This document shows, piece after piece, positions 7,501 through 30,994 of a stretch of 64,000 nucleotides of DNA (within the stretch, counting starts at the first letter, position 1; every line of letters starts with the position of its first letter). A model generated the notes under the pieces. That model searched no databases. It saw only the letters and a list, made by a program, of their open reading frames with translations, and was not told where the DNA came from. The stretch comes from Orbicella franksi (lineage: Eukaryota): assembly GCA_964199315.1 (NCBI GenBank), contig OZ116708.1, positions 27,342,001 through 27,406,000 on the forward strand, written 5' to 3'. A program made the translations under genes and the position numbers.

Positions 7501-10500
7501 ACTTAAATTTCCATATCTGTTTGATTCCGAGTGTTGAGTGGTAGTTCTGGGTTCGGAAAAAGCAATAATTTTGGCACATTTTTCGCGAATAAAATGGCAT
7601 TATAAATTGGCGATCTGTGACCTTGTCTTCATGTATGGCTGTGAAGTTTCTTAAAAGTTCAAAAAACAGTTTGAAATGCAAAATGAGTACTACGGAAATA
7701 TATCCGGGAAATTTTCTGTCTAATTCTATTGCGTTTGCATTTTAAATGGTTTCGAGTGAGTTCTACGTGCATCTCTTGACCTCAGACCCGGAAATGTAAC
7801 GCTGCCCAGTGTTTTTTGTTAATTCTAATAATAAATAAATATTCAGAAAAAATTCTAAAAATAAATATATATTCGGAAACTTTTTCTTTGCCATTTTCGC
7901 TTTCATATTATATTTGGTGCTTATCAAACGTTCCTTCAAGCAAACAACACAAATGAAATTCGCCATGCCAGTATTGAATAGGACAAAAAACCCCGATTTT
8001 CAAATATCCGGAAAATACGAAGGTATTGCCGTTCTTAAATTAAACCCGGCCTTAAAATAACCAGAAAGTAGCTAAAAAAAATCTTTTCCTTTCACTCATT
8101 CCAGATATAAACACTTGCATGATTGAAATTAGTTTCATTCCACGCAAGGTTTAAAGTTTTCTTAAAAATACAGAGCCGTTTGGAGATTATGCAACGCTCG
8201 CGTGACACCGGTTCAAAGAAAGGCCATTCTTGTCACGCAATACATCTATTTTACTCTGTTACTCTCTGAGGTCACGATATAAAAGCAAAGATAAATATGT
8301 TTTCAATTAACGTTATTCATTATATTTTCTATGACTTGATGATTTCAGTCTAGTTCAAGTCTACGCTGTTTGTGTGGAAAAACTTTTTTAATTTAGCATG
8401 AACGATAGAACAAAAGAGAAATAACGTAAGTGGAAGCTGCAGTTACTAAACGTGACATTTTCATAATATGTTGTCTTGTGTAGAGAAGCTTTCTGTCGAA
8501 ATGACTAAAATGTTCCTTTCTGTGCACAGTAGTTGTTATTTGTGTTTGTTTTGATTTTGCAAAAGATGAAAGAGTTGTCGAGAGGACTGTGTTTTGTAAC
8601 AGTAGCAGTGACCAGTCACGATGTGCCTGTTCATAGACTTTGAATGGCGTTGAGGCAACACAGATAAACAGACCGTGTGTTTGTTGACAAGACTGTTTTT
8701 GTTACAGCAGGGTGAAAATAACACGGGAAAAACGAAGTGAGAAGGCTATGAAATGTTGCCCAGTGATAACAGAAAGTTGGTAAGCCAACTAAGAGCTTAA
8801 TTGCGTGACAACTGTCCCAAACAAAAAACTTTCCCCGAGGATAAATAGGATCATATGGCGCCGGTATTCAATGTTTGTGACACATAACACGCCTTTCCTT
8901 TACGTAGTTTTCCATTGGTTTTCGTGGCATTTTTTCGAGATAAGAATGTCCTATAGGAACGCAGATCCCTAATTTTGCGACATTTTATGAGCGTAGGGCT
9001 TCCTGCGGTGAAGCAGTGCACCGTACAAAAGTACAGGACACTGGTTCTGTACAATTTAAAGCTTATCCTGTGCACGAGAACGGCCGTCTGCAGGGTTCAA
9101 GTCAACAAAAATGGACGTAAGAATCTCACCTTTGATATTTTACTGCGTCTGTCAGCTTATGTATGAAGTATAAACATGAATTATTCAAACAACCTTTGAT
9201 TGGTCGCGCGTAGTGCTACTTAAGACAGCTAGCCTTGCCGTGTCTCTACGTCTAGTGGTCGGTTCAAGGGCGGTTTTTTGCGAAGCTTTCTGGTACATAG
9301 CGACCAGTCGACTTAGCTCCTGTTTGTCCCTTACGGGCTGTCATTTTTCTTGCCACTGTAGGTCGACACGAGAATGCCGGACACAGATCCAACTTCGGCG
9401 GACGCCGAGTGGAAAAAGATTCAACAGAACACCTTCACAAGATGGTGCAACGAGCATCTAAAATGCGTGAACAAGTACATTTACAATTTGGAAACAGACC
9501 TTGTCGACGGATTAAAGCTCATAGCTCTGCTACAAGTCCTTTCGCACAAGAAAATAACGAGATACAACAAGAAGCCTTCGTTTAGACCGCAGAAATTGGA
9601 GAATATTTCTATCGCACTCAAGTTCATCGAAAGCGAGAACATTCGGTTGGTGAATATCGGTGAGTAAAAACCTTGCGTTTGATAATTTTCTCATAACGGC
9701 ACCAAACCACGCTTCGTAATTATATCTCGTAAATAAATGCAGCACTCCATTCCGCGAATTATTATGAAATTTTTATGACCCACCGCTAGTGTTACTTTCG
9801 CTCGTCTGTGTGTAGATTTCTTGCTATTTTTAGTAAGAAGCTTTTCAATCGCTGCTTTAGACAAACATGTTTACCAGAGTCAATATTTCCTAGCCGATAT
9901 TCGTGGTATCTTGTTCAAACTAGAAACAGTGAAGCTGTTAGAAGTTACTTTGGGTGTAAATAGGAGCGAATTCTGCGTTACCTATTGATACTACCATATT
10001 TAGTCATTTGTTCTCCTCAGACATGACTAGCAATGTTTGATTGTGCTGAAATTTGCTGTTGTCTAACCGAGCGTTCTGTATCAGCCGTTTCGTTCATTTG
10101 TTTGTCCGCAGACGTGAGAAGTATTCACCAAGTAATTTAAGATGAAGGATGTTAGGAAGTAAATTTGTTTAAGCTAGTAAATTTGCCAAAGCTTTCTGTC
10201 ATGTTTGATGGGCGTCAACCCAACCCTCTCACGCAAATTTTTCTGTGAACGTAGCAACAATTAGAATTATTATCCGGCTGACGTATGAACTCGAGAATTT
10301 CTCGACTGTTCTGTGTCCAGACTACCCAAAGTTTGTGTTACTGTTCTAAATTGCGTGCCAGATATCGACAAGTTTCCATCTTTTACTCTTGTTCGTGATC
10401 AAGTATTCTTTGTGTGTTCCACACGCTAACCATGGCTTGTTATAATTTTGACTTGAATTCTCCTGCAGTGTACAAATCTAATTAAACTGTCACAAAATAA

Positions 10501-13500
10501 TGGAATACCAAAAAAATAGCAAACAAACGATTCGTCGAGGTTCTGTCTATTTTAACCTAGTTAGCTTAAAAAAACATTCCCTGATTTAAGATACGACTTG
10601 TGAAGTTTAACCCGTGTCAAGTTTCTACAATCAAAACGTTCGAAGCCTATTGTTCCTTTACTCGATTATATGAAAGCGGTGTAAACAAATGAGATTTTTT
10701 AAGTGTGAAGACTTCTAAATTAAAATTCTACTCATTTCCAAGATTTCAATGAGGATTTAATATCAAAACCAGCTTAAGTAATCATAAGTATGAGGCAAAT
10801 TTTCCACTGCCAACGCTTAGACAAATATACTCCTTCTCTTTGGGAGTTCACCTTCACTCAAGCATTGTGGAATTTTAAATTGAGGGGACATGTTAAGTCA
10901 TGCGTATAATCATAAAATTTTTTAGTGAATCTCGGAATTATTCAGTCAATGACCACTAAATCCTGTTTATTGAAGAGTGGATAATCAATGATAAACTTTA
11001 TTTTTTACCCACGAGTTGTTTAAACAGTTACTTCTTGTTTCATGACTTTGGTATTTAATATTAACATAAAAGTAACAATCAAAAAGCTTTTGACAGAAAT
11101 TTAATAAATGATCTTTCAAGATATCTCTAAACACAATAAAAAGCCAATTACCTTGGTCAGTAATCTGTTTGCAAACCTAAATGGAATCTCAGACCGGTTC
11201 GATGTATTTTGACCTGAAGTAAGATTGCAGCTTCATATGAATGGCTTTGCAGAAACGTATGCTGCCAAACTTGGGTCAACTTTGTTTGTCAGGAAAACAC
11301 ATGCTACTTTCTGCATGTAATTAAAACAGCATCAGATTACACTCCTTGAAACACAACAGTTTGGTTGAATGTTTGATTTAACTTGTTTGGGAAAAAAAAC
11401 TGGCATGCTACAGCTTTCTTGTGGATGTTTCATTAATGAGAGTTTAACTCCCTGAAAATTTTGGCAAGCAATACAACACTATGCAATATTTTTTGTGGGG
11501 TTGCAAGTACCCCAATATTGTCACACCATTGTGGTATGGTATTGATACACCAGAGCACTGATGGAATTGAAAGGTTATTAAATTATGGAGATTAACCAGC
11601 ATCAAAATTATGTCAGTTTCTAATTAATGTTGAATATCAGTAGAAGCTTTGTTCAACAATATATTATACAAACCCACAAAATTGTGAACTTCCTTCCTGC
11701 AGAAGAAACCATAATATTGGTCGATGATTTAATTTCCATTTTTATGTGGCAAATAAAAATTTTGGATATCCGAAAACTTAACTAACCCTAACCCATATGA
11801 ACACAATATGTCATGTGTGGCTTAAAAATTATACAGGAACCACTTTTAAACAACAATGTAAAAAGAATGCTAACAGCACTGGTCCAGTGTGAAACCCAGG
11901 ATGATTAGATCAGCAACGAGACTTGTGACCACTACATGTTTGGAAATTTTATGAATATATCATCATTGTGTTAAGCTAACCATCACTAAAGAGCAGACCA
12001 TTTGCTTTTTAGTGCTATTTAGGCTAACAGGGTGGTTAGTTAGGCTTACCAGCTTGCTATTTAGGCCACAAAGTGCTGTTTAGAAGATCAGAGACTCTCA
12101 AGACGATGTTTAGGATTAATTAATGTAAGCTAACTGGGGTGCTATTAGCTTGCTAACTAGACTTGTTCCCAGTGCATTTGGAACTGAGATTGAGTCCTGT
12201 ATTTAATTGCTGTACATTATATATTACCCATATTATATTGTGCTGTTGGCACTCTGAACCATAACAGTATTTGTTGTTTCAAAAAAATCATTGCTGCGTT
12301 ATTAATTCATTTTCACTTGCCATAGCTGCAATTATCACTTTATGTAGCAACACAGATGGTGACGCATTCTTGAATTGCTCCTGACTTTGTGAACCTGAAC
12401 TCAAATTATAACTTTGTAAACTTTGGTTTTAATGTAGGAACCCAGGAAAAAATATGAATTACCTGATCTTATTTTTGCAGCTTCTATTTTGAATTTTAAC
12501 TGCTTTAAGTTTTTGCGAATATTAAATACTGCCAGATGAGAAACTTTGGCCACCTTCATTAAAAATATGTATTTCTAGCAACACTGATTTGAAGAGTTAA
12601 CTTGTTTAAAGTTTGGTTCTAAAAAAATTTGAGCAGGCTCTAAAATTTTGGACCACAAAATGTCAAACAAATGATCTTGTTTGTGTGTTAATGAACTTGA
12701 AGTAAATTTTGCAAGTCACAATAGGAACCTCTTATAATAATAAATTAATATTTTAAGAGGAGGCCTCCAATAGACCACTTTTGATGTATTAAAATTCCGC
12801 TTGGCAGTGAGGCTGAAAGGACACAACCAAAGGAAATTGAATGACCATGTTTATTCATTTCTTTTGTTTGTGTCCTCCAGGCCTCACTGTCAAGCTGAAT
12901 TTTAATATATTGAAAGCAATCTATCAGCTAGCGTCGATTTTCAGGGTGGTCCTCCAAAAAAAATTAAAGTGCAAAAGATGCCTTAAATGTCTAAAATGCA
13001 GAATAGAAATAAGCTAAAAACTTGAGACTAACTAGAACTAAGATTAAAAATACTACTATTTATTAAGGTTAAAGATGGTAAAGTAAAAAATGTTTCAGTT
13101 TGTGTTCAAAAATCCTTTTTGGCGTAAGTTTCTTAAGCTCACTCGGCAGTGAGGCCCAATTGGTAATTGCTTTAAAAAACATTTTAGCAGCATAAAAGTT
13201 AACATGCTCACTTGTGAGCATGCTAACAAGTGCTCAATTCTCAGAAGGCAAAGGGATCGTTGGATATAAATTAATGACAATAGATAGATGTTTTTGCATG
13301 CTTTTCATTTTAAATTGATTTGTCCCTTTATCAAATTCTGGAAATATTTTTATTTTTATTTCTATTGTAAATAATATCTATTGCTAATGTAGTTTTTATT
13401 ATTTGTATTTTTGTATTTTTTAGAGGTCCACAAGTTCATCAGTAATGTTAGTCACTGTTATGTGTCACCCGCATAAAATAAAGTCACTTACTTACTTGCT

Positions 13501-16500
13501 TACTTACTTACTTACTCACCCATGCCTGGCAAGCCTCATATATTTAGAGAAATTTTGTTGATCAATGCCATTTTTGTTTTGTTAAAAATTTCATCCTAAT
13601 TGAACTTGAGTAAGAGTTTATACTAACAAAGAATACTTATGCTGTATCATGACACCTAATTTAAAATATGAATTATAAATGACCCCTTGCACTCTTTTGC
13701 TCAAACATTGTAATCCATTTTTTATGTTAAGCCCCTAAATATCTGAATTTAACTTTTGTTTTGACAACTGGTTCACATTATCAAAAAAAAAAAAAAAAAA
13801 AAACTTAAGAAAAAGAAGAAAAAGCTCAATGCAGGTTAAAGGAAATTACTGGTATATATGTCATGGTTGAAGGCTATAAGTGTATGATGTTTACATCATC
13901 TGTTGTCCAACTATATGCAAATTGAGCAAACAAATGGCATTTATTCATGATTAATAATACCTTATATTATTGCCCTTTGCTTCTCATAAAATCATAAAAA
14001 AGAATAGAACACATTGGTCTGACATAATTAAAAGACCAATCTTTGCTGCCAGTGGGAATAATTCTTCAGCATCCAAACAACTAGAACTAATCTGGTATGA
14101 TCAACAAGATAATTGCTTGAATTAATTGTGATGTTGAGACCTTTAATGTGAAGCTGGAGGGCATGAATCTCCAGACAATAAGCCCCCCAATCTAGTTAAG
14201 GACAGGACATAGTTTTCATTCCATTGTATCTAAGAGCTGTTTTAATTATCTGCACTCTCAGCTACAAGTAAGACAACTTGCCAAAGAACTGATAAAAATA
14301 TTGTTGCATGATAATATTCTCTGTAAGACAGCAGTCTCTTTTTGAAACCAAAGTGACCTCTATGGTGAAGTTATATTATGCCCTTGACTATTCAGACGTG
14401 ATGGTATTTATGTAATTATGACCTGAAATAATTACACCTAGTGTTATTCTCTGGAATTAAAAAATTTGCATATGAGTTTCAATTAAGTATATTTTATGAT
14501 ATTTACTCTGGAATAATGCCTGGGAGGATGTAATAAAAACCACGTGTCAAATACATTAGGCATTGCCAGACGTGATGGTATTTTTATGACATAACAGAGA
14601 AGATTATATTTGCTTAAGTATAACACTTAGTTTGATTAGGGAAAATTATTTTTTCTATTAAATTTTTTAAAACGTAAGATGATTATTTTTTTAAGATAGA
14701 AAGAACCTTGTTCAGGTTGTGATGAATATAACAGACTGGTACAAAATGTGTAACAATGTGAATGCATGTTGAATAGTACTTCAAGTGATATTGCATGATC
14801 TGTATACCAGCTGAAAATGCTTTTGTCTATGTTGACTAGCTTTCAACAGTGCTGACTGTCTTTTATTAGTATTGCCACTGACTTACTCTACGTTGCAAAA
14901 CAAAATGAAGCAAAATGGAACAGTATAAAATGAAATGAAACAAACCAAGACAAGTGACAAAAAGATATATATTGAGTGCTATGGTCAGAAATCTTCTGAA
15001 AGAGGAGTAAAAACAATGGAAAATTGTGTAAAGTTTACTCCAAACTTCAAAATCTATATTGTGAAAAAGTGAGCCAAGAGATGAAAAAACCCTCTTGCTT
15101 TGCAAATGACAGATTCTTAAAAATCTCTATTTTGTGGAGTGATGCTTACAGGCCCATTTCGAATTGAAACTTTATTCTCTGTACTCTGCACTTTTTTGCA
15201 ACATCAGTTGGAAGATTTGTTTCAGATTTTACACTGGCAATATAGCTGATCTCAATGATGCTGATATTATTTATATGGTTTTAAATGCTTCTTTATCATT
15301 GCTAGATGCTAGTGACATCTTCAAGGGAAATATTAAATTGATCCTGGGTCTGATATGGACATTGATTCTGAAGTACCAGATCAGCATGCCATATCTTGAT
15401 GATGACGATGATGAAGGACAGAAGATGACGCCTAAACAAGCACTTCTGGCATGGGTGAAAAGCAAGATGCCAGAGTCTGTTCCAATGGATAATTTCAACA
15501 GAGACTGGAATGATGGACGAGCTGTAGCTTGCCTGGTGGATGCTGTTGCTCCTGGCCTCTTCCCAGAGTGTGAGGATCTGGACCCTGCCGATAGACTTGA
15601 AAATGCAAGACAAGCAATGCAAGCTGCTGAAGACTGGCTTGGTGTTCCTCAGGTAGTCATTTTACAGTCTCGGGGAGGGAATGGGTTGGATTATATTGTA
15701 TGAGTGAGTGTGAGTGACACTGCAGCAGAAAAGCTTATTGCACTGGTATGTTGAATAAAAGTGGTGGCAGTCAAAGATTTCTAGTGTGCATTTGATGCAA
15801 TCAATGAGAAAATTGGATATCTATAAGTATGCAAGAAAAATTACCCCCAAAAGAGCAGAAAGATTGAAGTGAAGTGCACAGAGATGAAATTTTAAGATTT
15901 CTTTCTGTGGTAACTGTAGATTCAGTGTGGCATGTAGGATATCAAGTGGCAGTTATTTTACATATCAAGATTTTCTTGAAAACTTAGAATAGTACAAAGG
16001 TTGCATATAGAGCAAACCCATAGCACTAAATGGATTTTGATAAAGTTATATTAGACCTTAGTTAACAAGGCTAGAGCATGCTTTTAGTGGGTTTGTTGAC
16101 TAAAGTGGGTTGACTAAAGTGGGTAGTATAGGGGTTGAATTGCCTAAAGCTTGATTCAAAGTAAGGTAAACAGTGCAAGAGAGATGTTAAGACTCTCCAG
16201 GGCCAAATTTTTGGAATATCAAGGTTATAATTATATCATTTTAAAAATTTTAAAGTATACTGATGCTCTTCTACATAACTGATATACTTAATTTTCTTAC
16301 AATCTTACAGGTTATCACTCCAGAAGAAATCACTAATCCTAACGTTGATGAACTGAGTGTCATGACATATGTCTCCTACTTTCCTGAGGCAAAACTGAAA
16401 CCCGGTGCTCCCCTGCGCCCAAGGACCCACCCCTCGGCAAAGTGTTCTGCCAAAGGACCCGGTGTGGAACCAAAAGGCCTTGTTGTCAAGAAGCCAGCCG

Positions 16501-19500
16501 ATTTTACTGTGCTCACTCAAGGTGCTGGAATGGGAAAGTTGAGTGTTTCTGTCTGGGGACCTGGAAAGTCAGAAGAGGAAGTAATTGTACGGGACAATCA
16601 AGATCATACCTTTGCATGTCAATACTTTCCACAGAAACAAGGTAATTTAAATATCTCTTTGCCCTTTCACCACTGGATAGCCCTTATGTGCTTGTGACAT
16701 CACTGTTTGGCTCAAATCTGGCCGATTTTGATGAAGGCATTAAATTGTGGCACCCCCACCCCCACCCCCCCCCCCCCCCATACATGATGTAGATGGACTG
16801 GGACAAAGTTCAAGGCACGAAAACACAACACTCCTTAGTTAATTGTACATGGGCAAGGCTGACAGTAACCAGCTTAGCTTTGACAAGCTTTGACAACACA
16901 TCCTGTCAACTCTCTGACTGGTTTTGACCAGTTCCAAAACTAAGGAGTTAATAGTTAAGGAGATTTAACATTTTAAGTTTACAGGTAATCTGTAGCATGA
17001 TTTTCTGTATCAGGAAAATATGATGTGCATGTAAAATGGAATGGGAGACATATCCCCAAGAGTCCATTCCGAGTGGAAGTTGGTCAAGATCTTGATGCCA
17101 GTCAGGCTTACGCCACAGGACCTGGATTGCAGCCTGAAGGAATCCAAGCCGGCAAGTACACAGACTTCACTGTGTTCACAAAAGGTGCTGGAGAAGGACA
17201 AGTGTCTGTCAAAGTTATTGATCCACGTGGTGGAGAAGATGTGGACATTATTATCGAACCACAGGAAGATGGGCAGTATTTTGTTGAATACCAGCCTGTT
17301 AACGCTGGAAAACACACCATCAAGGTGTTGTTTGGAGGACAACCAATTAGTAAGAGCCCCTTCCATGTCATGGTGAGCCCACCACGAATTGAACCCATCC
17401 CATCAAAAGTGCGAGTGTTTGGTCAAGGTAAGCAATCTTAAAGTGTCTATCTCGGTATTCTCTGGTAATGAGCTCCAAGCACACTTTTGACCTCTTGAAC
17501 ATTTTGTTTTTGCAGCCAAATAACTATTAATGAAACCTGTCTTCAGTGGCCATCTCTGCTAAGTTCCAGATAGGCTTTAATGAAAGAAAGGTTACCCATA
17601 TCAATAGGGGCTAAGTTTCAACAGGTCTATGGTTTAGAGGCTTACCAAATTGCAAGAAGTTTTCATTAATTTGTCACATTAGATCTAGCTGACTCTGTAG
17701 GGGTTTTGACCAGAGGCCCTTCCCTAAACTTCTGACTGTTCACCTATGAGGTTTTATTTTGTTTTATATGATTATGATTTGTTGGTTTGTTAAAAGTGAA
17801 AAGTAATGCTGTAGGCTTGAGACACCCATTGAAACTTCCTCTGTGTCTGTTTGTATGACTTTTGCCATACCACAAAAAGTATCTTTCGAAATTATGGACA
17901 AGTATACTTTATGTGGTCTTTGGATCTATAGTTAAAACCTGGTTTTTCCCTGGGTTAATTGATAATGACAAAAGCCGTACTTACATGCATGTATGTTTGT
18001 TAATAATGTTACAGGTGTCGAGCCAACTGGTTTAAAGGCTGGACAGCGAGCACCATTTACAGTTGATGCCAAGGGTGCAGGTGATGGTGAACTGGATGTG
18101 TTTGTGGAGGGCCCTCAAGGAGAAGAAAAAGTTGACATCAAGAACAACGGCGATGGGACATATTCATGTATCTACTATCCTGGGAAATTTGGAAAGTATG
18201 TTGTCAATGTGACATGGAGTTCAGTTCAGGTTCCAAACAGTCCTTTCAATGTCAAAGTTGCTCCAGCTGTTGATGCAAGTAGAATCAAAGCTTATGGACC
18301 TGGTTTGGAGAGAGGTGAAGGTTTTTCCTGTTTTGTTAGACAGGTTTTATTGTCAAGCACTGATTTCTGAGTTTTTGCTTTGGCACATGAGCAAGTTTAG
18401 GAATGATTTGTGGAGGCAGGGGCCACTGTTTTTTTTCTTACATTACTTTCTTGCGAATGAAAATATGGTCAAACCTGTATTAAGCAGCCACCTATTAAGT
18501 GGCTAGTTATCAAAGTCCCAAAATTATTGTCTCTAAAATATTTCAAATGAAACCCGTATTAAACAGCCACGGTCACCTTTTGGTTGTTCAGATGAAGGTT
18601 TTTTGTCTTTAACCCTATGAAACGGCCATGGTCCAAAATTAAATACACATAATTTAGCTTTGTTTTGGAAAAGGTAATGACAGACAAGAGTCAAAAATAG
18701 AAGGTGATGAGTGATAAAAACATTCAAACACTTTATCATGATTGCCTTGGAAGTGATTCCATGTTCACTAAGAAATTAACTAGGTGGTAAAAAGTATTCA
18801 AGTTACACCAACCCCTATTAAGGCACCTCTCATTTTTCCTGAGGGTGGCCACTTAATAGGGGTTCACTTGTACTACTTTTAAAAGCTAAAATTGGTGTTG
18901 AAGCAGTGTTCTGTTCAGGCTAAGATAAGTCATGTATAGATGTCTCACAGTGCTTGTACCCTTTTAACTCTTACCTCACAGGTACTGCAGGCAAGCCATG
19001 TGAGTTCACAGTGGAAACCAAAGGAGCAGGAATTGACAGTCTAGGATTTGCCATTGAAGGGCCATCTCAGGCAGAAATTCACTGTCAAGAGCGGTCACCA
19101 GGCATCTGTGATGTGCATTACTACCCAACTACACCAGGAAATTATGCTATTCATGTCACATGTGGGGATGAAGACATTCCCAAGAGTCCCTTTATGGTGC
19201 CAATATCACCTGCAGGAGATGCCAAGAAAGTGTACGCTGAAGGACCTGGTTTACAGCCTGAGGGTGTTGTAGCAGGTAAAGCTCTTTTCAGTTAGGCAAG
19301 TTTTCAGAGTGTAATGGGACCAGTCCTTTAATATGTTCTCCATGTGTACTTTGATGTTTACTACTTTGTTGATTTGGGCAGTTCCATTTTTTATCCACAC
19401 CCCCATGTTGAGGGTCAAGGAAATCTGAAAGGGTGGGGTAGGTCTTTAAAGGCAGTTTCTGAGGGAGCAACTGTGTCGGTACCTTCGATCTTTTATGTAC

Positions 19501-22500
19501 TCTGAAGGGGGAAGTGAGTCAGCGGTTGTGATAAGTTAACTTTTTTGAGGGGGTAAAATTCAAAGCTCTTCAACAGAGGGGAGGGTGCGGATATAAAATG
19601 GAATGACCCAATGAAGAGTTTTAACAGGTTTACTTATGTTATAAGCCAGTTTTAATTTATGACTATTTGAAATGCGTCGTAATTTATTCACTTGCTGAGT
19701 TGATGGACTATCTGCAAAATTGTAGCAATAAAACACAGGAACGTGGATGTTCTCATATCTTAATTTTTAGGCCTAAATATAGTCTGCAGTCTGCAAGTGT
19801 CATACAGCTGTACACTGACATTTTGGTAAGCTTTAGGTGAACTTACCCGTCGCATTTCTGCAACAATGGATAAACAAAGGCTTGTCCGGTTTGTCAAAGA
19901 CTCTGCAACGGTTTGTAGACAACAGGAAGTTGGAGTACAGTGGCTGCATTACACAGAAAATGACGAAAATTGAAGCTGAATTTTGTTACTTCACAAGTAT
20001 CCCTGCCGCCATATTATTAACACGCGGCCAGAAAATGTGAGGTCTGGGACCAATTTTATTTTCGGAAACTTTTCGTTGACAATCGGGCTATGAAAGTGTT
20101 ACGAACATGTTCCGAAGAAAAGGCGGATCTCAGACCTTCGTTCAATTTACTTTATGAAGTGCAGGGTTGAGGAATAGGAATTTCAGAGACCAGGAAATAA
20201 CACGAGAGTGTGTTTCTTTCTTCAGGTGTGCCAGCTGAGTTCACAGTTTTCACCAAAGAGGCTGGAGAAGGCGATGTTGACGTCCGAGTGATCGATAACA
20301 ACGGCAAGAAGGTTCCAGCGGACATCACTGACAACAAAGATGGAACTTACTCTGTGGTGTACTATCCAACAGCAGTCGGTGCGTACACGGTGAACATCAC
20401 TTTCAACTCTGAAAGTATTCCTAAGAGCCCCTTCAGAGTCAACGTCTGCCAGACCAACTCCGCAGCGTGCCGTGCTTATGGACCAGGCCTGGAGAAGGGC
20501 TTTGTCAATCAGAACAACGAATTCAAGATTGAAACTAAAGGAGCTGGCGAGGGTGGCCTGGGGCTGACCATTGAAGGACCATCAGAAGCGCAGATTGAGT
20601 GTAAAGACAACGGCGATGGGTCATGTGACGTCACTTACCTACCCCCAGACCCCGGCGATTACGTCATCAACATCTTATTTGCCGATGAGCACATCCCAGG
20701 GAGTCCTTTCAAAGCGAGGATCTCTTATCCTTTCGACGCCTCCAAGGTCAAAGTTGAAGGTCCTGGAATTGAGCCCGGGATACGCGCGGGTGAGCCAGCG
20801 GATATTGATATTGACACTCGCATGGCTGGAGATGCGGAACTGAAGGTTGAAGCAGTGGATGAGTTGAACAGCCCTGTTCAGTGCGACATTGATGAAGAGG
20901 AGTATGGAATATACGCTGTGACTTACTATCCCAAAAAGAAAGGTAGGATGTTATTCTCAAGTGCTTGTGGCGTTTGCGTTAAAAAACGCATCACAAAAAC
21001 GTTACCAAACGCGTTGCAAAACTCGTTACTTAGGTGGGTGTCTTGTGAAAACTCTAATGTATTTCACTTCGCTTTTCCTACGTTTGACTCAAGTCACGTG
21101 TTTTTCCCGCTCTTTCTATCTGCAACAGATTTCAGATATATATTTTAACTGGTTGCGCTCATTACAGCTGTAGCAATTGGCTGTTTGTCTCGGTTGTAAC
21201 TTTCCTCGAAAAAAGAAGTAAAAGGTACTTAATAAGGAAGACTTGCATCTGGTTTATTTTCACGCCTTTGAAGGTCGCTTGTATTTTTGAATTCAGATCA
21301 TTTTGAATAACATAAGTTTTGTTCTGTAATTTTTTGAGGTAACCACAAAGTCAGCGTCAAATACGGTGGAGTGCATGCGCCGGGAAGTCCATTCAAAGTT
21401 GCCATCTCGCCCAAGTCTGACGCGTCAAAAGTGAAAGTGACGGGACCTGGGGTTGAACCAACCGGAGTGCAACCTGGCAAGCCCACTTATTTTACTATTA
21501 ATGCTTCTGAAGCCGGAAAGGGAGATGTTCACGTGAAAGTGGAACCAGTCAGTAAGTATCTTTCTGTCTTGTTTGGATGAGAATGTTTTTCTTCGCGGTT
21601 TTCTTTCGCGTCTACACGACGGACTAAGCGAAAGAGGGACTACTCGTAGTCTAACCTTTCTTTGGTAACCAAATGAAGTATAAGATATGGCCGTCGTTTT
21701 TTCTATTTATAGAACGTGGGCGTCCTGTGGATGTGGAAGTGACCGAAGAAGGAAAAGACACATTCAAGTGTGAGTACGTGGCACCGGTGGAAGGAGCCTA
21801 CAAGGTCGATGTGAAATTTGATGGTAGCCCTGTGCCCGGCAGCCCTTTCCCTGTGGAGGTTGCCAAGCCTGGTGATGCTGGAAAATGCAAGGCTCAAGGC
21901 GATGGACTGGAGACGGCCATTATCGATCAACTGGCTGAGTTTGATGTCGACTGTAAATCTGCCGGTAAGATTAAGCTAGCGGAAAAATACATAGGTTCAT
22001 TTCCAAGGGTCTTCCCTTGTAAATTGGCGTTGCGTTTTTAGCGTTTGCAGAAGCCTATGAGTCATGAACCCCTGACGTTTGGGAGATTGTTGGGCGTGGT
22101 CGGGTGCGAGTGGGATGGGGTGTCGTGAAATATATCGTTACGCCATTATGCAACTTTCCCAATATCGCTGATACCATACATCAAAGAAGTGTGTGACAAT
22201 AAGTATATAAGTAGAATATTTGAACTCTGGTGAAGGCGGACAGAGGCCACCGGAAATTCAAGAAAAAGAAAAAAAAGCAGATCGGATTACAAAAAAGTCT
22301 TAGAATGTCTATCACCGATCGCAACACTGGAAGCAGTATTTCAAGCCTGGGGCTTAAAGAGGTGACCTGTGCTTTATTTCAGGAGAGGGACAGTTGATGG
22401 CGGCAGTAGACAATCCATCTGGTGCACACACAGACACCTTAGTCACTGACAATGAAGACGGTACATATTCTGTGTCGTACACACCATTTGAAGAAGGAAT

Positions 22501-25500
22501 ACACACGCTGAACGTTAAGTTTGGAGGTGATCACATTCCTGGCAGCCCGTTCAAGGTTAGTTTGCGTTTCCGCATAGCAAGAGTTAAACTGACATGAACA
22601 ATACTTTATCTACATCACAATACTTTTAAAAGCCTTTATCAGTTTGTAACGGAACACCTGTTGGATATTGTGTGACACCACGGTAACGGTTACGAATAAA
22701 TACGTAAGGCACGCTGTGAACCCATTCGAAGTAATGAAAATACTTTCACTTTATTCACAGGTCGATGTTCTTCCTCCCACGGATGCAACGAAGTGCAAAG
22801 CTTATGGTCCCGGCTTGGAAAATGCCCTTGTGGGTAAACCAGCTGACTTCACCGTGGAAACCAAAGGGGCTGGGGCTGGCGGCCTGAGCCTGGCCATCGA
22901 GGGACCTTCTGAGGCAAAACTCACTTGTAATGACCATGGAGATGGAACGTGCTCAGTGAAATACACGCCCACAGAGCCCGGTGATTATGAGATCCATATA
23001 AAGTTCGCCGATGAGCACATCCCCGGAAGTCCCTTCAACGCAAAGGTTTGCATTATAAAGTGAACATAGTGTTTTCACAAGACGTCTCAGGAGTCATATT
23101 GGTGTCCTGAAACAAATTAATCGGCGGCCATGTCGATGTCCCAAACCAATCCTGTGGGAGTTGAACTATTTTCTTTTGTAAACACTTTCTTTTGTTCGAA
23201 TACATTTGCATGTCTGCTGGCCAAGGGAGTGAAAACGCTCTACAGGATGTCTTATAGTCTTATAGTTAAACAATGTGGACAGACCCAGTCAATATTGATT
23301 TTATTTCTCAGGTGACACGTCCAGTTGATGCAAGTAAAGTGAAGTGTTATGGACCCGGTGTTGATCGTGTTAATCCGTTATACTCCAAGACACCACAAGA
23401 ATTCACTGTAGATACCTCTGAAGCAGGTGATGCTGACCTGGACATAACTGTAGAGACACCTAATAGGAAAACCCTTAAACCTGAGCCTGTCTGCGAGAAA
23501 GGAGATGGGGTCTATACGGTGGATTATACACCCGAGGATGAAGGTGAGATACGCATATTTATCAATTAAGCACGTTCGTTTTAGTGTGCGGTTGTTGTTG
23601 TTGCTTTATATGTACTTTTTTGCCGCTAAGCGGTTGTTCCTCTTTTCCTTGCTTAGCAAATCACTTAACTTCAGTTGTACTCGGGACTGACTTGTTCTTA
23701 TTTGCTAGTTGTAACCTTAGGTTGAACGTGACATAAACTGGCTCCAACTTGACTTCCGAATTCTTTTCACTCAAAGTGACCAAAATTTTTTAAAGAGAAA
23801 AAGAAATAATAAAGCAATGATGGAGTCAGTGATCTGGGAGGAACGAAGTTTGGAGAGGACTTGGGCGAAATTAATGGATGAGAGATGCTTTTAACATACT
23901 GATTACTCAAAAAACCTTCATGGGACAAGAACTGAAATATGCAAAGATATGCCAACGAATGCAAGACTAACATGCTGATTTGTCTTCTCGTCAGGTCGTT
24001 ACACTGTCAACGTGAAGTACGGTGACAAGCATGTCCCCAACAGTCCGTTCCGTGTCCGTGCCGGACCTCCCTTTGACGCGAGTAAAGTCAAGGTATCTGG
24101 ACCAGGAGTGGATGAGTCGCCGCTGACAGATGTGCCTGTACAGTTCGTTGCCGACTGTACCGAAGCTGGCACTGCTCCTCTGACAGGTGTGAACACTTTG
24201 TGGTAATCTTGCTTAAAGTTTTATAGTGATGGAATCAACCTTGTTCACAGGTTCTCTCTTCCCTCCGCGCTCTGGAGCGCAGGAAGAAGAGAGACCCTAA
24301 GAACGAGGTTGTCATGAAAGCTGCTCGTTCCCAGGGTTTTTTATTGTTCTTAGAAACACTGTTGTCTTGTTACTCTACGTTTGCTGTTCTTCTGGATTAT
24401 AAGAAAAGGAGATGTGACGCTCTCATCATTTTCTAATTGCAGCGACTGTAGCGCCGCCTAGTGGCCCTGATCTGCCTGTAGATGTAAAGGAAAATGGTGA
24501 TGGAACTTATACCCTGGAATATGTACCTGAGAAACCAGGCCGCCACAGTGTTGACGTCAAGTACGGTGGCAAGAGAGTTCCAAAGAGTCCGTTTAGAGTC
24601 CAGGTTAAACCGAGTGGTGACGCGTCTAAAGTGGAGGTCGATGGACTGGGACCTGATGATACTTTCACTGTGGGTAAAGAGAATGACTTCACGGTGGACA
24701 CCACAAAAGCTGGGAAAGGTGAGATGCGTCAGGATAGATTTTTAAATAATATTTTATATGGAAAGAGGTGAGTTGAAGAGTCATGGCGAAGACTTTTAAT
24801 ACCCGGCAATAGGCCATATTCGTATTCTCGGTATTGGAGTGGAACTAGCTTGCAACTGAGGTTAATACGGGGAGTCTTTTCAAATGCAAATTAAATTAAT
24901 ATCTTTAAAGGGTATTCTTCCGCGTGAGCCTCCATTGCAAGCTAGGTACAGTCCAATACCGAGAATACAAATATGGCCTACTTTGAGAGAGATTGAAAAA
25001 GTAGCTGTAACTGAGAAGGTTTGCCTGTTATAAGAGTTGATGAACTTAATTACGCTGTGCAAACTCGAGCTATTTTAAATTCATAAGAGTAACAATAGCG
25101 TTTTTACGTCATGTAGGAGTACCCAAGTGTGTTATCAAAGGCCCCAGGAGGAAGGAAGTTCCGGTTGAAGTTCTAGACAATGGTGATGGTACCTTCGACT
25201 GTGTCTTCGTCCCCGAAGATGAAGGACGTCACGATGTCGATGTTCTTTTTGGCGGCGAACCTGTACCCGGAAGTCCCTTCAAAGTGAAGGCTAAAAAACC
25301 TATTGATGTCGACAAGATCAAATGCCAGCCTAAGGCTGATAAGGAGCCAATAGTGGACGAGGAACTTGTCTACGCCATCGACACACGACCCACCGAGTCG
25401 GCCCCTGGTGAAGGCCTCCTAAATGGCTCTCTCTTGACGCCCTCTGGTGAAAAGGAGCCTGTTAAAGTCAAGGACAACAACGACGGTACCTATGACGTTT

Positions 25501-28500
25501 GTTGTGTACCTAAGGAGCCTGGACCCCATGAACTCGCCGTGGATTATGACGGTGTACCGCTGGTTGGTAGTCCGTTCAAGTTTGACGCCGTAGAGGGAGG
25601 AGCAGATAAAGTGAAGGCGTACGGAAAAGGTAAATGTCTCTCCCCTTCACGGCTCTATTTTCTTTATCCCAACCCTTTCCTCGGTTAATTTAACTTGTCT
25701 CAAGTCGATGGACATAAAGTGAAAGCAAACGTCTGTAAATTTGCTTACTTTGCAGGGTTAGAGCGTGGATTGGCTGGAGAGCCTTGCGAATTCACCATCG
25801 TTACAAAAGACGCTGGACCAGGCGGCCTCGCTTTGGCTGTTCACGGACCAAGCAAAGCGGAGATCACGTGCACCGATAATGGAGATGGCACATGCACAGT
25901 GCAGTACGTTCCCGACGAACCTGGTAAGCCTGTGGTTCAGTTTACTTTTTTCATAAGCAGTTTTAGGTTCTGGTATCGCGCACCGAGTTCGATTCTGTAA
26001 GGGGAAAATAAATTGGAATTTAAATGCAGTGATTTTGGAGTAAGGAAATCTAGAAAGTCTGGAGAAAAATATTTAGGGAAAGAAGAGAATGCGAAGAAAA
26101 GTCATAAAGAGTTGGACACCATGGCCGAGGTTAGAATGTTAGCCATGGTTATTTTGAGAGTATTAAAATAAACGACCGGTTCATGTTCTGAAAGACTGTG
26201 ATGAAGTAACTTATTTCTAACCAGTTCGCGTGAAAGTTTTTTTTCTTTTTTCTCATATCTCACTCATCTTGCTTTTTTTTGTTTTAGGTGATTACGACAT
26301 CAGCTGTAAGTTCGCAGATAAAGACATCCCAGGGAGTCCTTTCACAGCTCACATCTACTCTAACTATGATGACCTGGATGCCGCCGCTCCTCGTCCAACA
26401 GTTGGCAAACCATGTGACGTAGAACTGAAAATCCCCGAATCATTCCGACCAGAGGACATCGCGAAGGGCGTGGTCACTGCTGAACTTGAGAGACCAAACG
26501 GACGCAAGGAACCATTGGAACCTCTCCGCGTGAACGACGATGGCACTCTAGCGGTTACGTTCATCCCGTACGAACCCGGCGAGCACTTGATCCACGTGTA
26601 CAAACGCGGACGCGAAGTTCAGAACAGTCCATTCTCGGTTATGGTACATGCGCAACGTGTTGGCGACGTATACCCCGTCGGACACACTTGTGATCTCGAT
26701 TTTAAAGTTCCCGAAGACATCGAAGATCTTGTGGCGACACTGAAGCGCCCCAGTGGTAAGGTAGAAGAGTCGTTGAAGCTACAACCCGGTCCACAGCCAG
26801 GGACAATCAGCGTGTCATTTGTACCTAGAGAGGCTGGAGAGCACTTCCTGTCCATCAAAAGAAAGAAGGACAAGAGCCCTATCGCTGGCAGTCCGTTCTC
26901 TATCCTGGTGGAGTCGGAGGAACCTGTAGAGGGCGTAGGATGCCCCGTAGACTATTGCTTCAGCTTGGATGATGTGAATCTTCCCGAGGATATCGAAAAG
27001 AACAGAATAAAGGCTACAATAAAGAGGCCATCGAGCGATATAGAAGAACCAATTGACGTGAAGCTGAACTCAGACAACACTCTTAGCTGCTCGTTTGTTC
27101 CGCGTGAAACTGGCCTTCATTACATCAACATTAGAAAGTACGGCCGACATGTGGAAGGTAGTCCATTTGTTATCAAGGTGACAGCACCAGAAGGGGTTTC
27201 AAGCGTTGGTAAGCCGTACGGAAAAGGTTTGGAGAGTCCCGATATCAACTTACCGGAAGACTACCCTAGGCTAACTGCTGCTCTGAAGAGACCGTCCAGT
27301 CCTAGAGAGGAGGAGCTGAAACTTGTCCTGAATGGAGATAACACCTTGGGCGTGGCATTCACCCCACGCGAAGAGGGCGAGCATTTGATTCATCTCAGAA
27401 AAGACAAAAAGGATGTACAGAATAGTCCTTACAGCGTGATGGTTGGAGCGAAGGAAGAGAAGGTGGAAGAGGTACATCCTATGGGACGAACGTGCGATGT
27501 GAACCTGGATATTCAAGGTGTCAAGCTGCCTGAAGACCTTGACAAAGATCTGCTTAGAGGATTCCTCAAACGGCCAAATAGCACCAAAGAGGAACCTCTT
27601 AAACTTGAAATCACCAGTGACAATTCTCTGGGCGTGTCATTCGTGCCCCAGGAACCTGGTGAACACCAGATAAGCGTCAGGAAGAAGACTCCGGACAGAA
27701 AATGGAAAGATGTGCCAGGAAGTCCCTTCTCCATCATGGTGGAAGCGGCCGAAGCAGTTAACGCTGTTGGTACACCATGTGATTGTCTCCTAGATATGCC
27801 TAGTGTACGTATCCCTGAGGATCTAAAGAAACTCACTGCGACTCTCAAGAGACCATCGAGCCGCCACGAGGAAGATCTGAAGTTGAGAGTAACATCAGAT
27901 AACAAACCTTTCGCTTCCTTCGTTCCACGCGAGCCTGGCCCGCATTTGATCAGTATCAAGAAATACGGTTCACACGTGAAGAACAGCCCATTCACTGTCA
28001 TGGTGGTCGCCCCCGAGGCTGGAAACGCCATTGGTCGGCCGTGCGGTGTTGGACTCGAGATCCCAGGACTAAAACTCCCGGATGATTACAACAACGGTCT
28101 TTTGAGTGCTAGTCTAAAGAGGCCTTCTGGGAAACCTGAGGAACCTCTCCCTCTTGCTCTCAACTCCGATAACACATTGAGCGTCTCGTTTACACCACAG
28201 GAGACTGGAGAGCACTTTGTCACGGTCAAGAAGTCTGGTAACCACGTGAATGGCAGCCCATTTTCAGTGATGGTCAGTGGTCCAGGCCCAGCTGATCCGA
28301 GCAAAGTGGTCTGCACGGGTCCAGGTAAGAACCGTTGTTTTTTATTTAAGTTAATAATGTAAACTGAAATAATTTGTTACAAGTACGTGGCGTTTATACA
28401 GAGAGACCAATAATTTCAAACTTGTACTTTTTCGTTTAGGTCTACATGACGGTGTGGCCGGTAAGCCCAGCTCTTTCACCATTAACACCCGAGATGCTGG

Positions 28501-30994
28501 CTACGGAGGACTGGGTCTTTCAATTGAGGGACCCTCCAAGGCGGAGATAAACTGTGTTGACAACGAGGATGGCACATGTACAGTGGATTATCTTCCTGTT
28601 GAACCCGGCAAGTACACGATCAATGTGAAGTTTGCCGACGAGGATGTACCCGGAAGTCCATTCACATCAAATGTCCGACCATCGGGAGATGAAATTCAAC
28701 CAGTCGAAGAGAACTTGGTAAGATTGATTGAGATAAAAACGATGAATCCGAAGCTTAGACTGATAACGTGACAATGATGCGACTTAAGAGGCTAATAAAT
28801 TGTCAAAAACATGAACACATTCTGTCGGGTTTCGATGACTGCGACGCCAAACTGTGTTCCAATTATTGAGATTTATTTCAATAAAATAAAGTTAGTGAGA
28901 GTTTCAAGTGTTAATACCAAGTGAACTGCACCTGTTAATGATGTAAAGAAAGTGAATGTTCTGTACTTAACGATCTAGGAAAAGTCATGTATGAGAACCA
29001 AAGTTTGGACAACATTTGCGCGAAAAAATTTGCCGTAGAGATGCGTTGCTGTTGGAATCTTGAAAATTTTCCTTTTTAATTTTTAGTTCGTTTCCAACAA
29101 CAAAACGTATTTTTTGTTTGCAAAGGGTGGGCGCGCGCGACTAGCATAACTGACTTTTTCAATACTCCATCTGTTTGTTGGTCGGATAAAAGCGGTGTTT
29201 TTATTGGTCAAGAGCACGTAAATGATACCCAAGCCGCGTCTCTACGTCATTAAAAACAATAGACGCCGCAGGTCCTGTCAGTTAACAAGTAAAAATACAG
29301 GTCCTTAAGCGATAATGTTGCCTAATGTTACCGTTGTTTAAGATGTGTCGAGTAAAAACTCCCCATGTATATTTCTAATTCAAAGTCTCTCAACCTAGTT
29401 CTCAATATTTCAATAACCAGTCTAAAAGGGTTAAAACTCCCTTCCCTGACAACGATATGTTTCTTGGAAATTTTACGAATTGACTGTTTTCTTCCTCTGT
29501 GTTTTGCAGGTGAGTTCGTCTGCACCAGATCAGTTCTCTGAGCCTCCACATCGAGTGTCTGAAGTTTTCGAGGATCTGGTGACGTTCGGTTCCACTCCCG
29601 CTCAGCCTCATGACTTCGTGTTTGATCTCAAAGGCTACAAGATGGACGATCTTGAAACCATGGTGATAAGCCCTGACGGAACGGAACTCGAGTCCGAGAT
29701 TATCGAAACGACACCGAAGACGTACACCATCCGCTTTGTGCCGAAAGAGAGCGGCGAACACACTATCTATGTTAGATTCAAGAGCGGAAGAAAGAAGGAC
29801 ATCCCTGGAAGTCCATTCAAGGTCTTTGTCGAGGCACCAGTGTGGGGTGGGGCTGCAAAATGCGTGGCTGCAGGTCCTGGGCTTGAAAGAGGTGTGGTGA
29901 ACCATCCGGGAGATTTCACTGTGTGGACACGTGATGCCGGTCCAGGAGGCCTTGCGATTGCAGTCGAAGGTCCTGCCAAGTCAGAGATCAAATGCACCGA
30001 CAACGGAGACGGGTCTTGCAACATTTCCTACCTACCCACCACGCCCGGGGAATACACGTGTCATATTCGGTTTGCGGATGAAGACATTCCCGGAAGTCCT
30101 TACAAGGTCCAAGTATCGCCGGAAGTGGAGGACCGCTTTAGGGATCTCAACGTCACCGACCTCGCCGAGAGCGGATTAAAGGTCAACCAGCCCGCTTCAT
30201 TCTCCGTGCAAACAAATGCAGCTGTAGGAGATGTGACTGCTTCTGTCGTGGCGCCTTCAGGGGACGAAAAAGAAGCTCAAGTGTCTAAACTCGGCGGTGG
30301 GAACTTCGCCATTCGCTTCACCCCTAGGGAATATGGGGACCACCTCGTCAATGTCCGTTTTGATGGCTCTCATATCCCCGGTAGCCCGTTCAAGATCAGG
30401 GTAGGCGGGGCAGAAGGTCATCCAGAGAAAGTCAAGGCTTATGGTGAGGGATTGAGCAAAGGAAGGGTCGGCGAATCAGCAGAGTTTACTGTGAACGCTC
30501 TGGAAGCCGGCTCAGGTGCGCTTGCTCTCTCCGTAGACGGTCCCGCTAAGGTGAAGATGAATTGCAGTGAAAATCCCGACGGTACCTATCAAGTCACGTA
30601 CAACCCGGTCGTAGCAGGCGAGTACACGATAAGAATAAAATTCGCTGGTCAAGACATCCCCGGGAGCCCGTACAACGTAACGATTTACCCGTCCGATGGT
30701 AAATACGCCAGCACGGGCGACGCGTCCAAGTGCACCTCGCGAGGAACTGGTCTTCATAGCGCTGTCCTCGGGCAGCCAAACTCCTTCACTGTCAACGCTA
30801 GCAATGCTGGTCGTGGTTCCCTGATGGTGGGTGTTGAAGGCCCTGCGATACCAGCTAAAGAAATCAACGTCAAGCACACGGGCAGCAACGTGTATGCTGT
30901 GAATTACGCCCTAGAGGAGCCTGGTACCTATGTCCTTAAAGTTCTGTGGGCAGATAAGCACATCCCTGGAAGCCCTTTTCACGTGACAGTTTAA
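1048..30994 (+). CDS. FLN: Filamin (CH1-CH2 actin-binding domain plus 28 filamin Ig repeats), 20 coding exons, about 3110 aa (about 2930 aa if started at ATG 9374)
   Basis: Exons: 1048-1575, 9362-9659, 15306-15652, 16311-16641, 17014-17427, 18015-18314, 18982-19275, 20226-20942, 21339-21551, 21713-21964, 22383-22555, 22761-23045, 23312-23543, 23995-24186, 24443-24718, 25117-25629, 25756-25923, 26288-28324, 28440-28717, 29510-30994. All introns are GT-AG, phases agree and the total is 9333 nt (divisible by 3). Hallmarks: [33 protein letters not shown], repeated GPGL...GSPF Ig motifs, C-terminal [11 protein letters not shown] dimerisation repeat. Inclusion of exon 1 is less certain than the rest. 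Confidence 0.96.
3526..3563. repeat. Imperfect (TTG)n microsatellite
   Basis: TTATTGTTGTTGTAATTGTTGTTGTTATTGTTGTTG. Confidence 0.85.
4598..4703. repeat. Fold-back (hairpin) repeat remnant
   Basis: TGAAGATATGATTGATCATCG...CGATGATCAATCATATCTTCA outer arms with an inner GCAGTTGTGAAATTAAAG/TTTAATTTCACAACTGC stem. Confidence 0.75.
5184..5221 (+). ncRNA. Minimal type I hammerhead ribozyme motif (Penelope-like element type)
   Basis: CUU-CUGAAGA-U-[GCGUGC-UGUA-GCAUGC]-GAAA-CG-UC-AAG: complete core, 6-bp stem II, palindromic ACGU mini stem III, 3-bp stem I (CUU/AAG). Preceded by a U-rich tract typical of PLE ends. Confidence 0.65.
5457..5662. mobile_element. MITE with GGGCGGAT...ATCCGCCC termini (PIF/Harbinger-like)
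   Basis: CATGGGCGGATCC...AATCCGCCCCTG inverted ends plus GGGGGAGAG/CTCTCCCCC subterminal arms. Confidence 0.7.
9190..9361 (+). promoter_or_regulatory. Candidate internal promoter/5'UTR for a short-N-terminus filamin isoform
   Basis: Reverse CCAAT (GATTGG 9198-9203), CGCGCG and GC box GGGCGG (9268-9273) in a CpG-rich patch just upstream of the exon carrying the canonical filamin Met. Confidence 0.4.
12771..12923. mobile_element. MITE (about 150 bp, long imperfect TIRs)
   Basis: TAGACCACTTTTGATGTATTAAAATTC...GAATTTTAATATATTGAAAGCAATCTA, with inner GCAGTGAGGC/GCCTCACTGT arms. Confidence 0.65.
13240..13517 (+). mobile_element. 3' end of a non-LTR retroelement with (TTAC)n tail
   Basis: AT-rich 3' region ending AAATAAAGTCA followed by (CTTA)n. 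About 85 nt of it recurs at 53540-53623, next to the N gap. Confidence 0.55.
19374..19611. mobile_element. MITE
   Basis: TTGGGCAGTTCCATTTTTTATCCACACCCC...GGGTGCGGATATAAAATGGAATGACCCAA inverted termini. Confidence 0.7.
24236..24311. mobile_element. Short hairpin MITE, CAACCTCGTTCCCAG family
   Basis: CAACCTTGTTC...GAACGAGGTTG termini. Family members at 36472-36558 and partial copies near 4428 and 24325. Confidence 0.75.
24811..24979. mobile_element. MITE with about 50-bp TIRs (AGGCCATATTCGTATTCTCGGTATTGG...)
   Basis: Near-perfect inverted arms. A second copy in opposite orientation lies at 31511-31683. Confidence 0.85.
26288..28324 (+). CDS. FLN: Filamin exon 18 (2037 nt): end of the Ig17-like repeat, seven Ig18-like repeats, start of the Ig19-like repeat
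   Basis: Uninterrupted ORF with TTTTAG| acceptor and G|GTAAGA donor. Seven units of the form G.pCd...PED....a.LkRPs...EepL.....DntL.vsF.P.E.GeH.i.vkk....v.gSPF.vmV. Confidence 0.93.

Follow-up and report, generated by a model that had tools for sequence, protein, structure and literature searches.

An array of seven tandem Ig18-like repeats in the filamin of the coral Orbicella franksi, shared with other cnidarians

Introduction

Filamin force sensing is explained by strict even-odd pairs of repeats (16-17, 18-19 and 20-21). In FLNA, the first strands of Ig18 and Ig20 cover the ligand faces of Ig19 and Ig21, respectively, and force removes them (PMC4554727). Here we describe a filamin gene of the coral Orbicella franksi in which one exon encodes seven tandem units, most like Ig18, at the place where vertebrate filamins have one such repeat. 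The gene lies in a window of 64,000 nucleotides (assembly GCA_964199315.1, contig OZ116708.1, positions 27,342,001 to 27,406,000, forward strand), and positions below are those of the window.

Repeat number in invertebrate filamins varies via tandem and single-domain duplications, and lineage-specific filamin repeat expansions occur in leech (Hirudo) and Trichoplax (PMC8275333, summarising Light et al. 2012). The published 18-species filamin set includes Nematostella (28 domains) and Hydra (26) without singling out a cnidarian array; the paper on it, citing Light et al. 2012, names leech and Trichoplax as the only lineage-specific expansions. Full-text searches, with Light et al. 2012 outside their reach, returned no description of a cnidarian tandem Ig18-type array, and cnidarian proteins stand in RefSeq as 'filamin-A/B-like'. 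The sequences are public and the repeat count is published; the array architecture appears to have gone unremarked.

A preliminary description of this DNA, made from the letters alone, had called the architecture unfamiliar. It is not peculiar to this gene, since we found the same array in Nematostella RefSeq filamin-A isoform X1 and arrays of 5-24 units in other cnidarians; by the condition that the description itself had set, the array is real but, as a sequence, no longer new.

Results

A single exon encodes seven tandem units

We found the seven units (U1-U7) in exon 17 of the filamin gene, with the following layout; paired values are ultrafast bootstrap (UFBoot) / Shimodaira-Hasegawa-like approximate likelihood ratio test (SH-aLRT) supports from the domain tree below, and HMM is hidden Markov model.

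26288..28324, + strand: exon 17, 2037 nt, phase 1 to phase 1
26356..26649, + strand: U1, 98 aa, Ig18-type; unit HMM 128 bits; Nematostella U1 orthologue, 100/84
26650..26913, + strand: U2, 88 aa, Ig18-type; U5 paralogue, (U2,U5) 98/88
26914..27183, + strand: U3, 90 aa, Ig18-type; U6 paralogue, (U3,U6) 99/91
27184..27447, + strand: U4, 88 aa, Ig18-type; U7 paralogue, (U4,U7) 97/87
27448..27744, + strand: U5, 99 aa, Ig18-type; short insert TPDRKWK ahead of the last strand
27745..28008, + strand: U6, 88 aa, Ig18-type
28009..28278, + strand: U7, 90 aa, Ig18-type; adjoins the Ig19-like repeat; first-strand segment nearly invariant in anthozoans

The exon lies inside an open frame of 713 codons (26221-28359), is bordered by an acceptor AG (26286-26287) and a donor GT (28325-28326), and holds the last two strands of an Ig17-like repeat, the seven units (88-99 residues each) and the first strand of an Ig19-like repeat. 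PF00630 matched its frame in seven stretches (E = 1.5e-63); the single stretch reported in detail starts only at profile position 39. Unit boundaries were set with an HMM built on the units themselves, which scores 100-137 bits for each of U1-U7 versus 10-42 bits for all other repeats of the gene. Hence, the preliminary description was right in placing seven tandem units in one exon: the profile gives seven stretches, and RNA joints fall only at the exon ends. The Ig17-like (exon 25756-25923) and Ig19-like (exon 28440-28717) flanks that it named are likewise present.

The start points proposed earlier (26401, 26659 and so on) fall on a first-strand motif, VG.PCD, found in each unit (e.g. GTTGGCAAACCATGTGA at 26401, encoding VGKPCD). 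In an alignment with Ig16, Ig18 and Ig20 of Ovis FLNA, the canonical first strand DASKV..GPGL is replaced by VG.PCDV.LDIP in U1-U7, as in vertebrate Ig18 and Ig20, and the motifs [LIV]P[ED]D and L.RP[SN]...SF.P.E.GEH are present in the units; the missing strand and the shared motifs had both been noted before, and the alignment agrees. Six of the seven units (U1-U6) have no class A (odd-type) neighbour, as had also been stated of the six extra even-type domains.

Among themselves the units share 37-53% protein identity and 46-58% DNA identity, third codon positions are 21-40% identical (about saturation), and only short DNA repeats are left within the array. Hence, the duplications are old and the array is no effect of assembly; the suggestion that the expansion is old finds further agreement in the one-to-one orthology with Nematostella given below.

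The array exon is transcribed and spliced exactly

The RNA evidence comprises four RNA runs, two of them as raw reads, including polyA run X23. We found that exon 17 is covered by about 100-200 reads in X23, like its neighbouring exons, with depth zero or near zero in the introns at 26000-26199 and 28800-29399. The joints 25629 to 25756, 25923 to 26288, 28324 to 28440 and 28717 to 29510 are each carried by more than 100 reads in X23, and contigs of two other runs contain the same four. Within exon 17 or across it, the four runs show no joint. Phase 1 at both ends made skipping of the exon conceivable; it was rejected, as there is no skipping joint and the product would fuse half of Ig17 to half of Ig19. 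Hence, the array exon is expressed and spliced exactly, constitutive as far as these runs go, and its presence in transcripts, on which the earlier proposal depended, is borne out by polyA depth and splice joints.

That the array is an assembly duplication or an untranscribed pseudo-exon has next to no probability: the units are only 46-58% identical in DNA, RNA covers and splices the exon exactly, and orthologous single exons are present in the independent coral assemblies L001 and L002 and in Nematostella.

Between 25169 and 30673, about 25 positions differ from the window in all X23 reads (e.g. 25169 A>G, 27183 A>T and 28167 C>A). These differences fit another individual or strain more than RNA editing.

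The units resemble Ig18 more than other even repeats

We built a domain tree with IQ-TREE from 105 rod-2 repeats of 12 filamins, using the Ig17 and Ig19 groups as outgroup. All cnidarian array units and seven bilaterian Ig18 repeats form one clade (100/89), and the Ig16, Ig20 (bilaterian and cnidarian Ig20-like) and Ig22 groups lie outside it; the Ig16-like repeat encoded by exon 15 falls with bilaterian Ig16 (96/84). The repeats on either side of the array fall in the Ig17 and Ig19 clades, and the gene has its own Ig20-like repeat further downstream. In pairwise scores against sheep FLNA repeats, Ig18 is best for five of the seven units, Ig20 for one (U2) and Ig16, weakly, for one. Among solved structures, the best sequence matches are FLNA 19-21 (top), FLNA 18-19 and FLNB Ig18. 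The tree, the pairwise matches, the matches in PDB and the position support the units being of the even rod-2 type and most like Ig18.

The units might instead come from Ig20 or from an Ig18/20 precursor, which would make 'Ig18-type' a positional label only. Forcing the units together with Ig20 costs 12.4 log-likelihood units (delta lnL) and is not rejected by the approximately unbiased (AU) test (p = 0.18); the scores of the units to Ig18 and Ig20 are close, several being nearly tied, with U2 best against FLNA Ig20; the top PDB sequence match of the exon is FLNA 19-21; and the Cys-Asp motif of the first strand is nearer to that of Ig20, VGSHCDLSLKIP. However, the best tree joins the units to Ig18 and leaves both bilaterian Ig20 and cnidarian Ig20-like repeats outside, Ig17-like and Ig19-like repeats flank the array directly in a filamin that has a separate Ig20-like repeat downstream, and the best single-domain structural match is FLNB Ig18. 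We consider an origin from Ig20 unlikely. Since the units form a clade with Ig18 and are flanked by Ig17 and Ig19, descent from Ig18 is the best reading, short of proof, and the units most probably descend from the single Ig18 of an ancestral rod 2. The earlier claim that they cluster with Ig18 thus stands for the best tree and does not stand as an exclusion of Ig20.

The array is old and is a cnidarian trait

We found U1-U7 of the coral to be one-to-one orthologues of U1-U7 of Nematostella (supports 97-100, 62-65% identity). Hence, the seven-unit array is older than the split between corals and sea anemones. Within a clade of U2-U7, the sister pairs (U2,U5), (U3,U6) and (U4,U7) are supported, which looks like a three-unit cassette, U2-U3-U4, duplicated into U5-U6-U7 before that split.

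A census of units, based on the HMM, gave seven in the present coral, in P0198 (a transcript-derived protein of a related coral), in Nematostella and in two further coral exons, 6-8 in three anthozoan-like sequences, and 11 and 13 in two coral lineages (anthozoan range 6-13). The jellyfish Rhopilema has 11, hydrozoans have 11-24 (Hydra 24, with 5 in an older Hydra model), and marine transcripts have up to 25. Tandem arrays are therefore present in all five named cnidarians (Nematostella, Hydra, Clytia, Hydractinia and Rhopilema). In Trichoplax, sheep FLNA, two Branchiostoma, Ptychodera and four molluscs we found no tandem Ig18-type units; these filamins have one or two such repeats, never adjacent, and the comparison set is without sponges, ctenophores, arthropods, nematodes and leech. 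In the tree, orthology between jellyfish and hydroids is confined to the first two medusozoan units, and hence much of the array growth was parallel. The array is a cnidarian trait, enlarged separately to 11-24 units in jellyfish and hydroids.

In related corals, L002:10001-13852 (P0151) and P0313 have the orthologous single exon with 13 and 11 units, respectively. In P0151 a U1-type unit is amplified, with some copies 89-91% identical and an alternating two-unit pattern; hence, copy number is still changing within corals.

Several further proteins were encountered on the way. Two Hydra vulgaris models differ (P0194 with 45 repeats, 24 units and 4417 aa versus P0197 with 26 repeats, 5 units and 2714 aa), perhaps because array exons are spliced alternatively or because the older model is incomplete. 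The hydrozoan proteins P0171, P0182 and P0184 (in the same 90% clusters as P0174 and P0015) share residues 1-2603 with a 3197-aa form, after which come either one more Ig19-like repeat or several diverged ones, together with a second series of 5-9 Ig18-type units. Splice isoforms, paralogues and chimeric assemblies are all conceivable explanations. Mollusc filamins (Littorina, Mya, Mactra and Bradybaena) have 3200-4000 aa, and in Littorina P0205, the only mollusc classified repeat by repeat, repeats 8-16 are a run of Ig9/17-like repeats (class A, ligand-binding type) in rod 1. The giant multi-repeat proteins P0003, P0004, P0007 and P0009, although among the top matches, were rejected as relatives of the array, as they have no Ig18-type units.

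Each unit is predicted to be a complete domain

We modelled the end of the array with AlphaFold2. The four-domain model U5-U6-U7-Ig19 of a related coral (22-row alignment) has a predicted local distance difference test score (pLDDT) of 83 and a predicted template modelling score (pTM) of 0.37, and its multi-domain Foldseek matches in PDB reach a template modelling score (TM) of about 0.5 or less with a root-mean-square deviation (rmsd) of 10-27 Å. Packing between units was dropped as a conclusion from this model in view of the low pTM and the poor pair matches. The model of U6-U7 of the present coral, made from a 54-row alignment of consecutive unit pairs so as to bring out any general contact between units, is better (pLDDT 92, pTM 0.59). 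In it both first strands are confident beta strands (pLDDT about 94), U6 with its first strand included (model residues 3-93) superposes on the isolated solution structure of FLNB Ig18, 2DMC (Z 11.6, rmsd 2.1 Å, 86 residues), and U7 (residues 93-178) superposes on canonical single repeats. No solved filamin pair resembles the U6-U7 arrangement (TM 0.36-0.41). The models predict that each unit is a complete immunoglobulin-like (Ig) domain, with no confident packing between units; the earlier idea that the units pair with each other finds no echo in them, as both the two-domain and the four-domain model give complete single domains in arrangements unlike solved pairs.

We measured conservation over nine anthozoan sequences. 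The first-strand segment reaches 0.97 in U7, where the remaining residues score 0.76; in U1-U6 this segment scores 0.66-0.85. Hence, no other part of the array is as well conserved as the first strand of U7. When U7 and the Ig19-like repeat (P0198) were run as a two-chain complex, the score was 0.01, which counts neither for nor against contact.

These results bear on the possibility that the units form a chain of serial force-gated latches, each first strand docking on the C-D face of its neighbour and that of U7 on Ig19. All units have kept the sequence VG.PCDV.LDIP, which is similar to the strand with which Ig20 covers Ig21 in FLNA, the first strand is a confident beta strand, and the pTM of the two-unit model is not negligible. 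However, whole units superpose on isolated domains (3-93 on 2DMC and 93-178 on canonical repeats), the model has no likeness to solved strand-swapped filamin pairs, and in U2-U6 conservation of the first-strand segment does not exceed that of the remaining domain. Such a chain is improbable in our judgement.

The alignment of unit pairs also bears on a non-mechanical role, in which the array would be a regulated platform for multivalent docking or phosphorylation, its L-K-R-P-S/N loop fitting a basic-residue kinase consensus. The R and P of this loop are (nearly) invariant over the 54 unit pairs, and the motif occurs once per unit. However, the Ser gives way to Asn in U1 and U5 (RPN), the cnidarian consensus keeps only 'rP', and even-type FLNA repeats are outside the known ligand-binding class. 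We regard a platform of this kind as very unlikely.

The array belongs to the only canonical filamin gene

The rest of the gene was modelled by splicing, guided by Nematostella filamin-A P0199, with the following features.

9374..30991, + strand: filamin gene, 19-exon coding model, 2930 aa
9374..9659, + strand: exon 1, start codon and CH1 of the actin-binding domain (PF00307, E = 4.1e-14)
15306..15652, + strand: exon 2, end of CH1 and most of CH2 (PF00307, E = 1.1e-15)
25117..25629, + strand: exon 15, end of the last rod-1 repeat, Ig16-like repeat and first strand of the Ig17-like repeat (PF00630, E = 7.7e-33)
25756..25923, + strand: exon 16, core of the Ig17-like repeat (class A), in the bilaterian Ig17 group of the tree
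28440..28717, + strand: exon 18, core of the Ig19-like repeat (class A), then linker; bilaterian Ig19 group, 95/80
29510..30991, + strand: exon 19, linker, Ig20-, 21-, 22-, 23- and 24-like repeats and stop codon

Every intron is GT..AG and there are no internal stops. The product has two CH domains and then 28 filamin repeats, in the order 13 rod-1 repeats, Ig16-like, Ig17-like, U1-U7 and Ig19- to Ig24-like. We found both marks of a filamin, namely an actin-binding domain of two CH domains (PF00307 on exons 1 and 2; CH1 of exon 1 is 80% identical to a hydrozoan filamin CH1) and a long PF00630 series on one transcript (exons 15, 17 and 19, joined by RNA and collinear with P0198). By sequence score, the last repeat is the orthologue of FLNA Ig24 (262 versus at most 177 for other repeats), which puts the predicted dimerisation domain, repeat 24, at the C-terminus. 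Exon 19 matches PF00630 in five stretches (E = 5.6e-107) and is 80% identical to Nematostella. P0198 (2937 aa) is collinear with the model, with 87.6% identity and the same 28 repeats, and identity to P0199 is 72.7% overall. The model has 2930 aa in place of the 3110 aa proposed before.

We found no second strong match to the C-terminal exon 19 in the 497-Mb assembly. Hence, the coral has one canonical filamin gene. Weak filamin-repeat matches on another contig (G000:C7:15611778-15621212, 30-41% identity to the C-terminal exon) mark a distant filamin-repeat protein and no second canonical filamin.

Rod 1 (9374-25629) has 12 or 13 repeats ahead of the Ig16-like repeat in cnidarian filamins versus 15 in vertebrates, and the coral filamin is without a long hinge-1-like insert ahead of the Ig16-like repeat. 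Upstream of the gene, an open frame of 189 codons (1018-1584, + strand), rich in Ser, Arg, Asp and Glu, has no Pfam match. It shows no significant similarity to the N-terminal extension found in Nematostella isoform X1, and homology between the two was rejected; the size of the frame is about the difference between the 3110-aa and 2930-aa models, and an alternative 5' exon and a separate gene are both possible readings of it. Downstream, open frames at 32913-33695 (+ strand, 261 codons) and 35109-35459 (+ strand, 117 codons) have no Pfam match and probably belong to the next gene as exons. The 315 N at 53624-53938 are an assembly gap or masked sequence.

Discussion

A proposed force-gated U7 and compliant U1-U6 extension

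Our overall reading, to which we give a probability of about 0.6, is that the only canonical filamin of this coral carries a constitutive seven-unit exon derived from Ig18, that the array is cnidarian-wide, and that it would combine masking by U7 with a compliant extension made of U1-U6. Each unit would fold as an autonomous Ig domain. U7, adjoining the Ig19-like repeat, would keep the job of Ig18, covering the ligand face of Ig19 with its first strand in force-gated masking. U1-U6 would form a flexible extension of rod 2, possibly an extensible one that unfolds or straightens at low force. A filamin Ig domain measures about 3-4 nm; at this size, U1-U6 would add roughly 20-25 nm per subunit. 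The extension would set the 16-17 pair apart from the 18-19 and 20-21 sensor pairs and give a longer cross-link arm.

Several observations weigh against this reading. Tissue-specific skipping of the exon is possible, the RNA being four runs only, two of them raw. On descent, the close Ig18 and Ig20 scores and the AU result count here too, and in the tree U7 stands no nearer to bilaterian Ig18 than U1-U6 do. The AlphaFold2 arrangement of U7 and Ig19 is unlike the FLNA 18-19 pair 2K7Q (TM 0.52, rmsd 10 Å), and first-strand placement was read indirectly, from superposition ranges. Masking of Ig19 by U7 is suggested by homology and first-strand conservation. The spring, spacer and ligand-platform ideas raised for the array are likewise inferences.

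A bolder extension, which we put forward as speculation and think doubtful, is that the partner-less Ig18-type series is a new mechanosensory element. Its conserved first strands would detach and toggle between their own domain, a neighbour unit and the few class A grooves, those of the Ig17-, 19- and 21-like repeats. The series would then gauge force in several graded steps or hold masking strands in reserve, over a range tuned by copy number (5-25 across cnidarians, and still shifting in corals).

Significance

Cnidarians depart, and do so conservedly, from the strict even-odd pairs by which filamin force sensing is explained: the even partner of one pair has been multiplied 5-25 times without odd partners and retained for hundreds of millions of years. 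The arrays are a natural series of rod-2 lengths, in which the role of an unpartnered Ig18-type domain, and that of rod-2 length and compliance in cross-link geometry and sensor threshold, can be approached, and carriers of the array (Nematostella, Hydra, Clytia and Hydractinia) are genetically tractable. Variation in repeat number among invertebrate filamins is familiar, and the sequences were already annotated as filamin; repeat-evolution studies listed these proteins without noting the array, and that picture is corrected here.

Comparison with known systems

Titin offers a functional analogy only. Like the array, its I-band strings autonomous Ig-like domains together by short linkers within a cytoskeletal protein that bears load, and our model likewise predicts beads without fixed packing. 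Unlike the titin I-band, the array has far fewer copies and no sequence kinship with it beyond the Ig-like fold.

Among filamins, the extra repeats of molluscs are unlike the cnidarian array, being Ig9/17-like class A repeats in rod 1, and Trichoplax differs from cnidarians in having no tandem Ig18-type units. The single Ig18 of vertebrate filamins A, B and C shares with the array units the fold and the signature (VG...I, E.DL..LTA, P.G.EEP, F.P.E.GEH and SPF), the position after Ig17 and before Ig19, one clade in the best tree and the best structural match (Z 11.6). The coral array differs in having seven copies versus one, a 4-residue insert ahead of the P-E-D turn and six units without a class A partner; compared with the vertebrate 18-19 pair, we infer the masking of Ig19 in the coral. 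In Hydra, Clytia, Hydractinia and Rhopilema, filamin carries an array of such units at the corresponding place; unlike that of the coral, these medusozoan arrays are longer (11 to 24 units, 5 in the older Hydra model) and grew mostly independently. Filamin-A isoform X1 of Nematostella, like the coral protein, has 28 repeats with the seven units in the same order.

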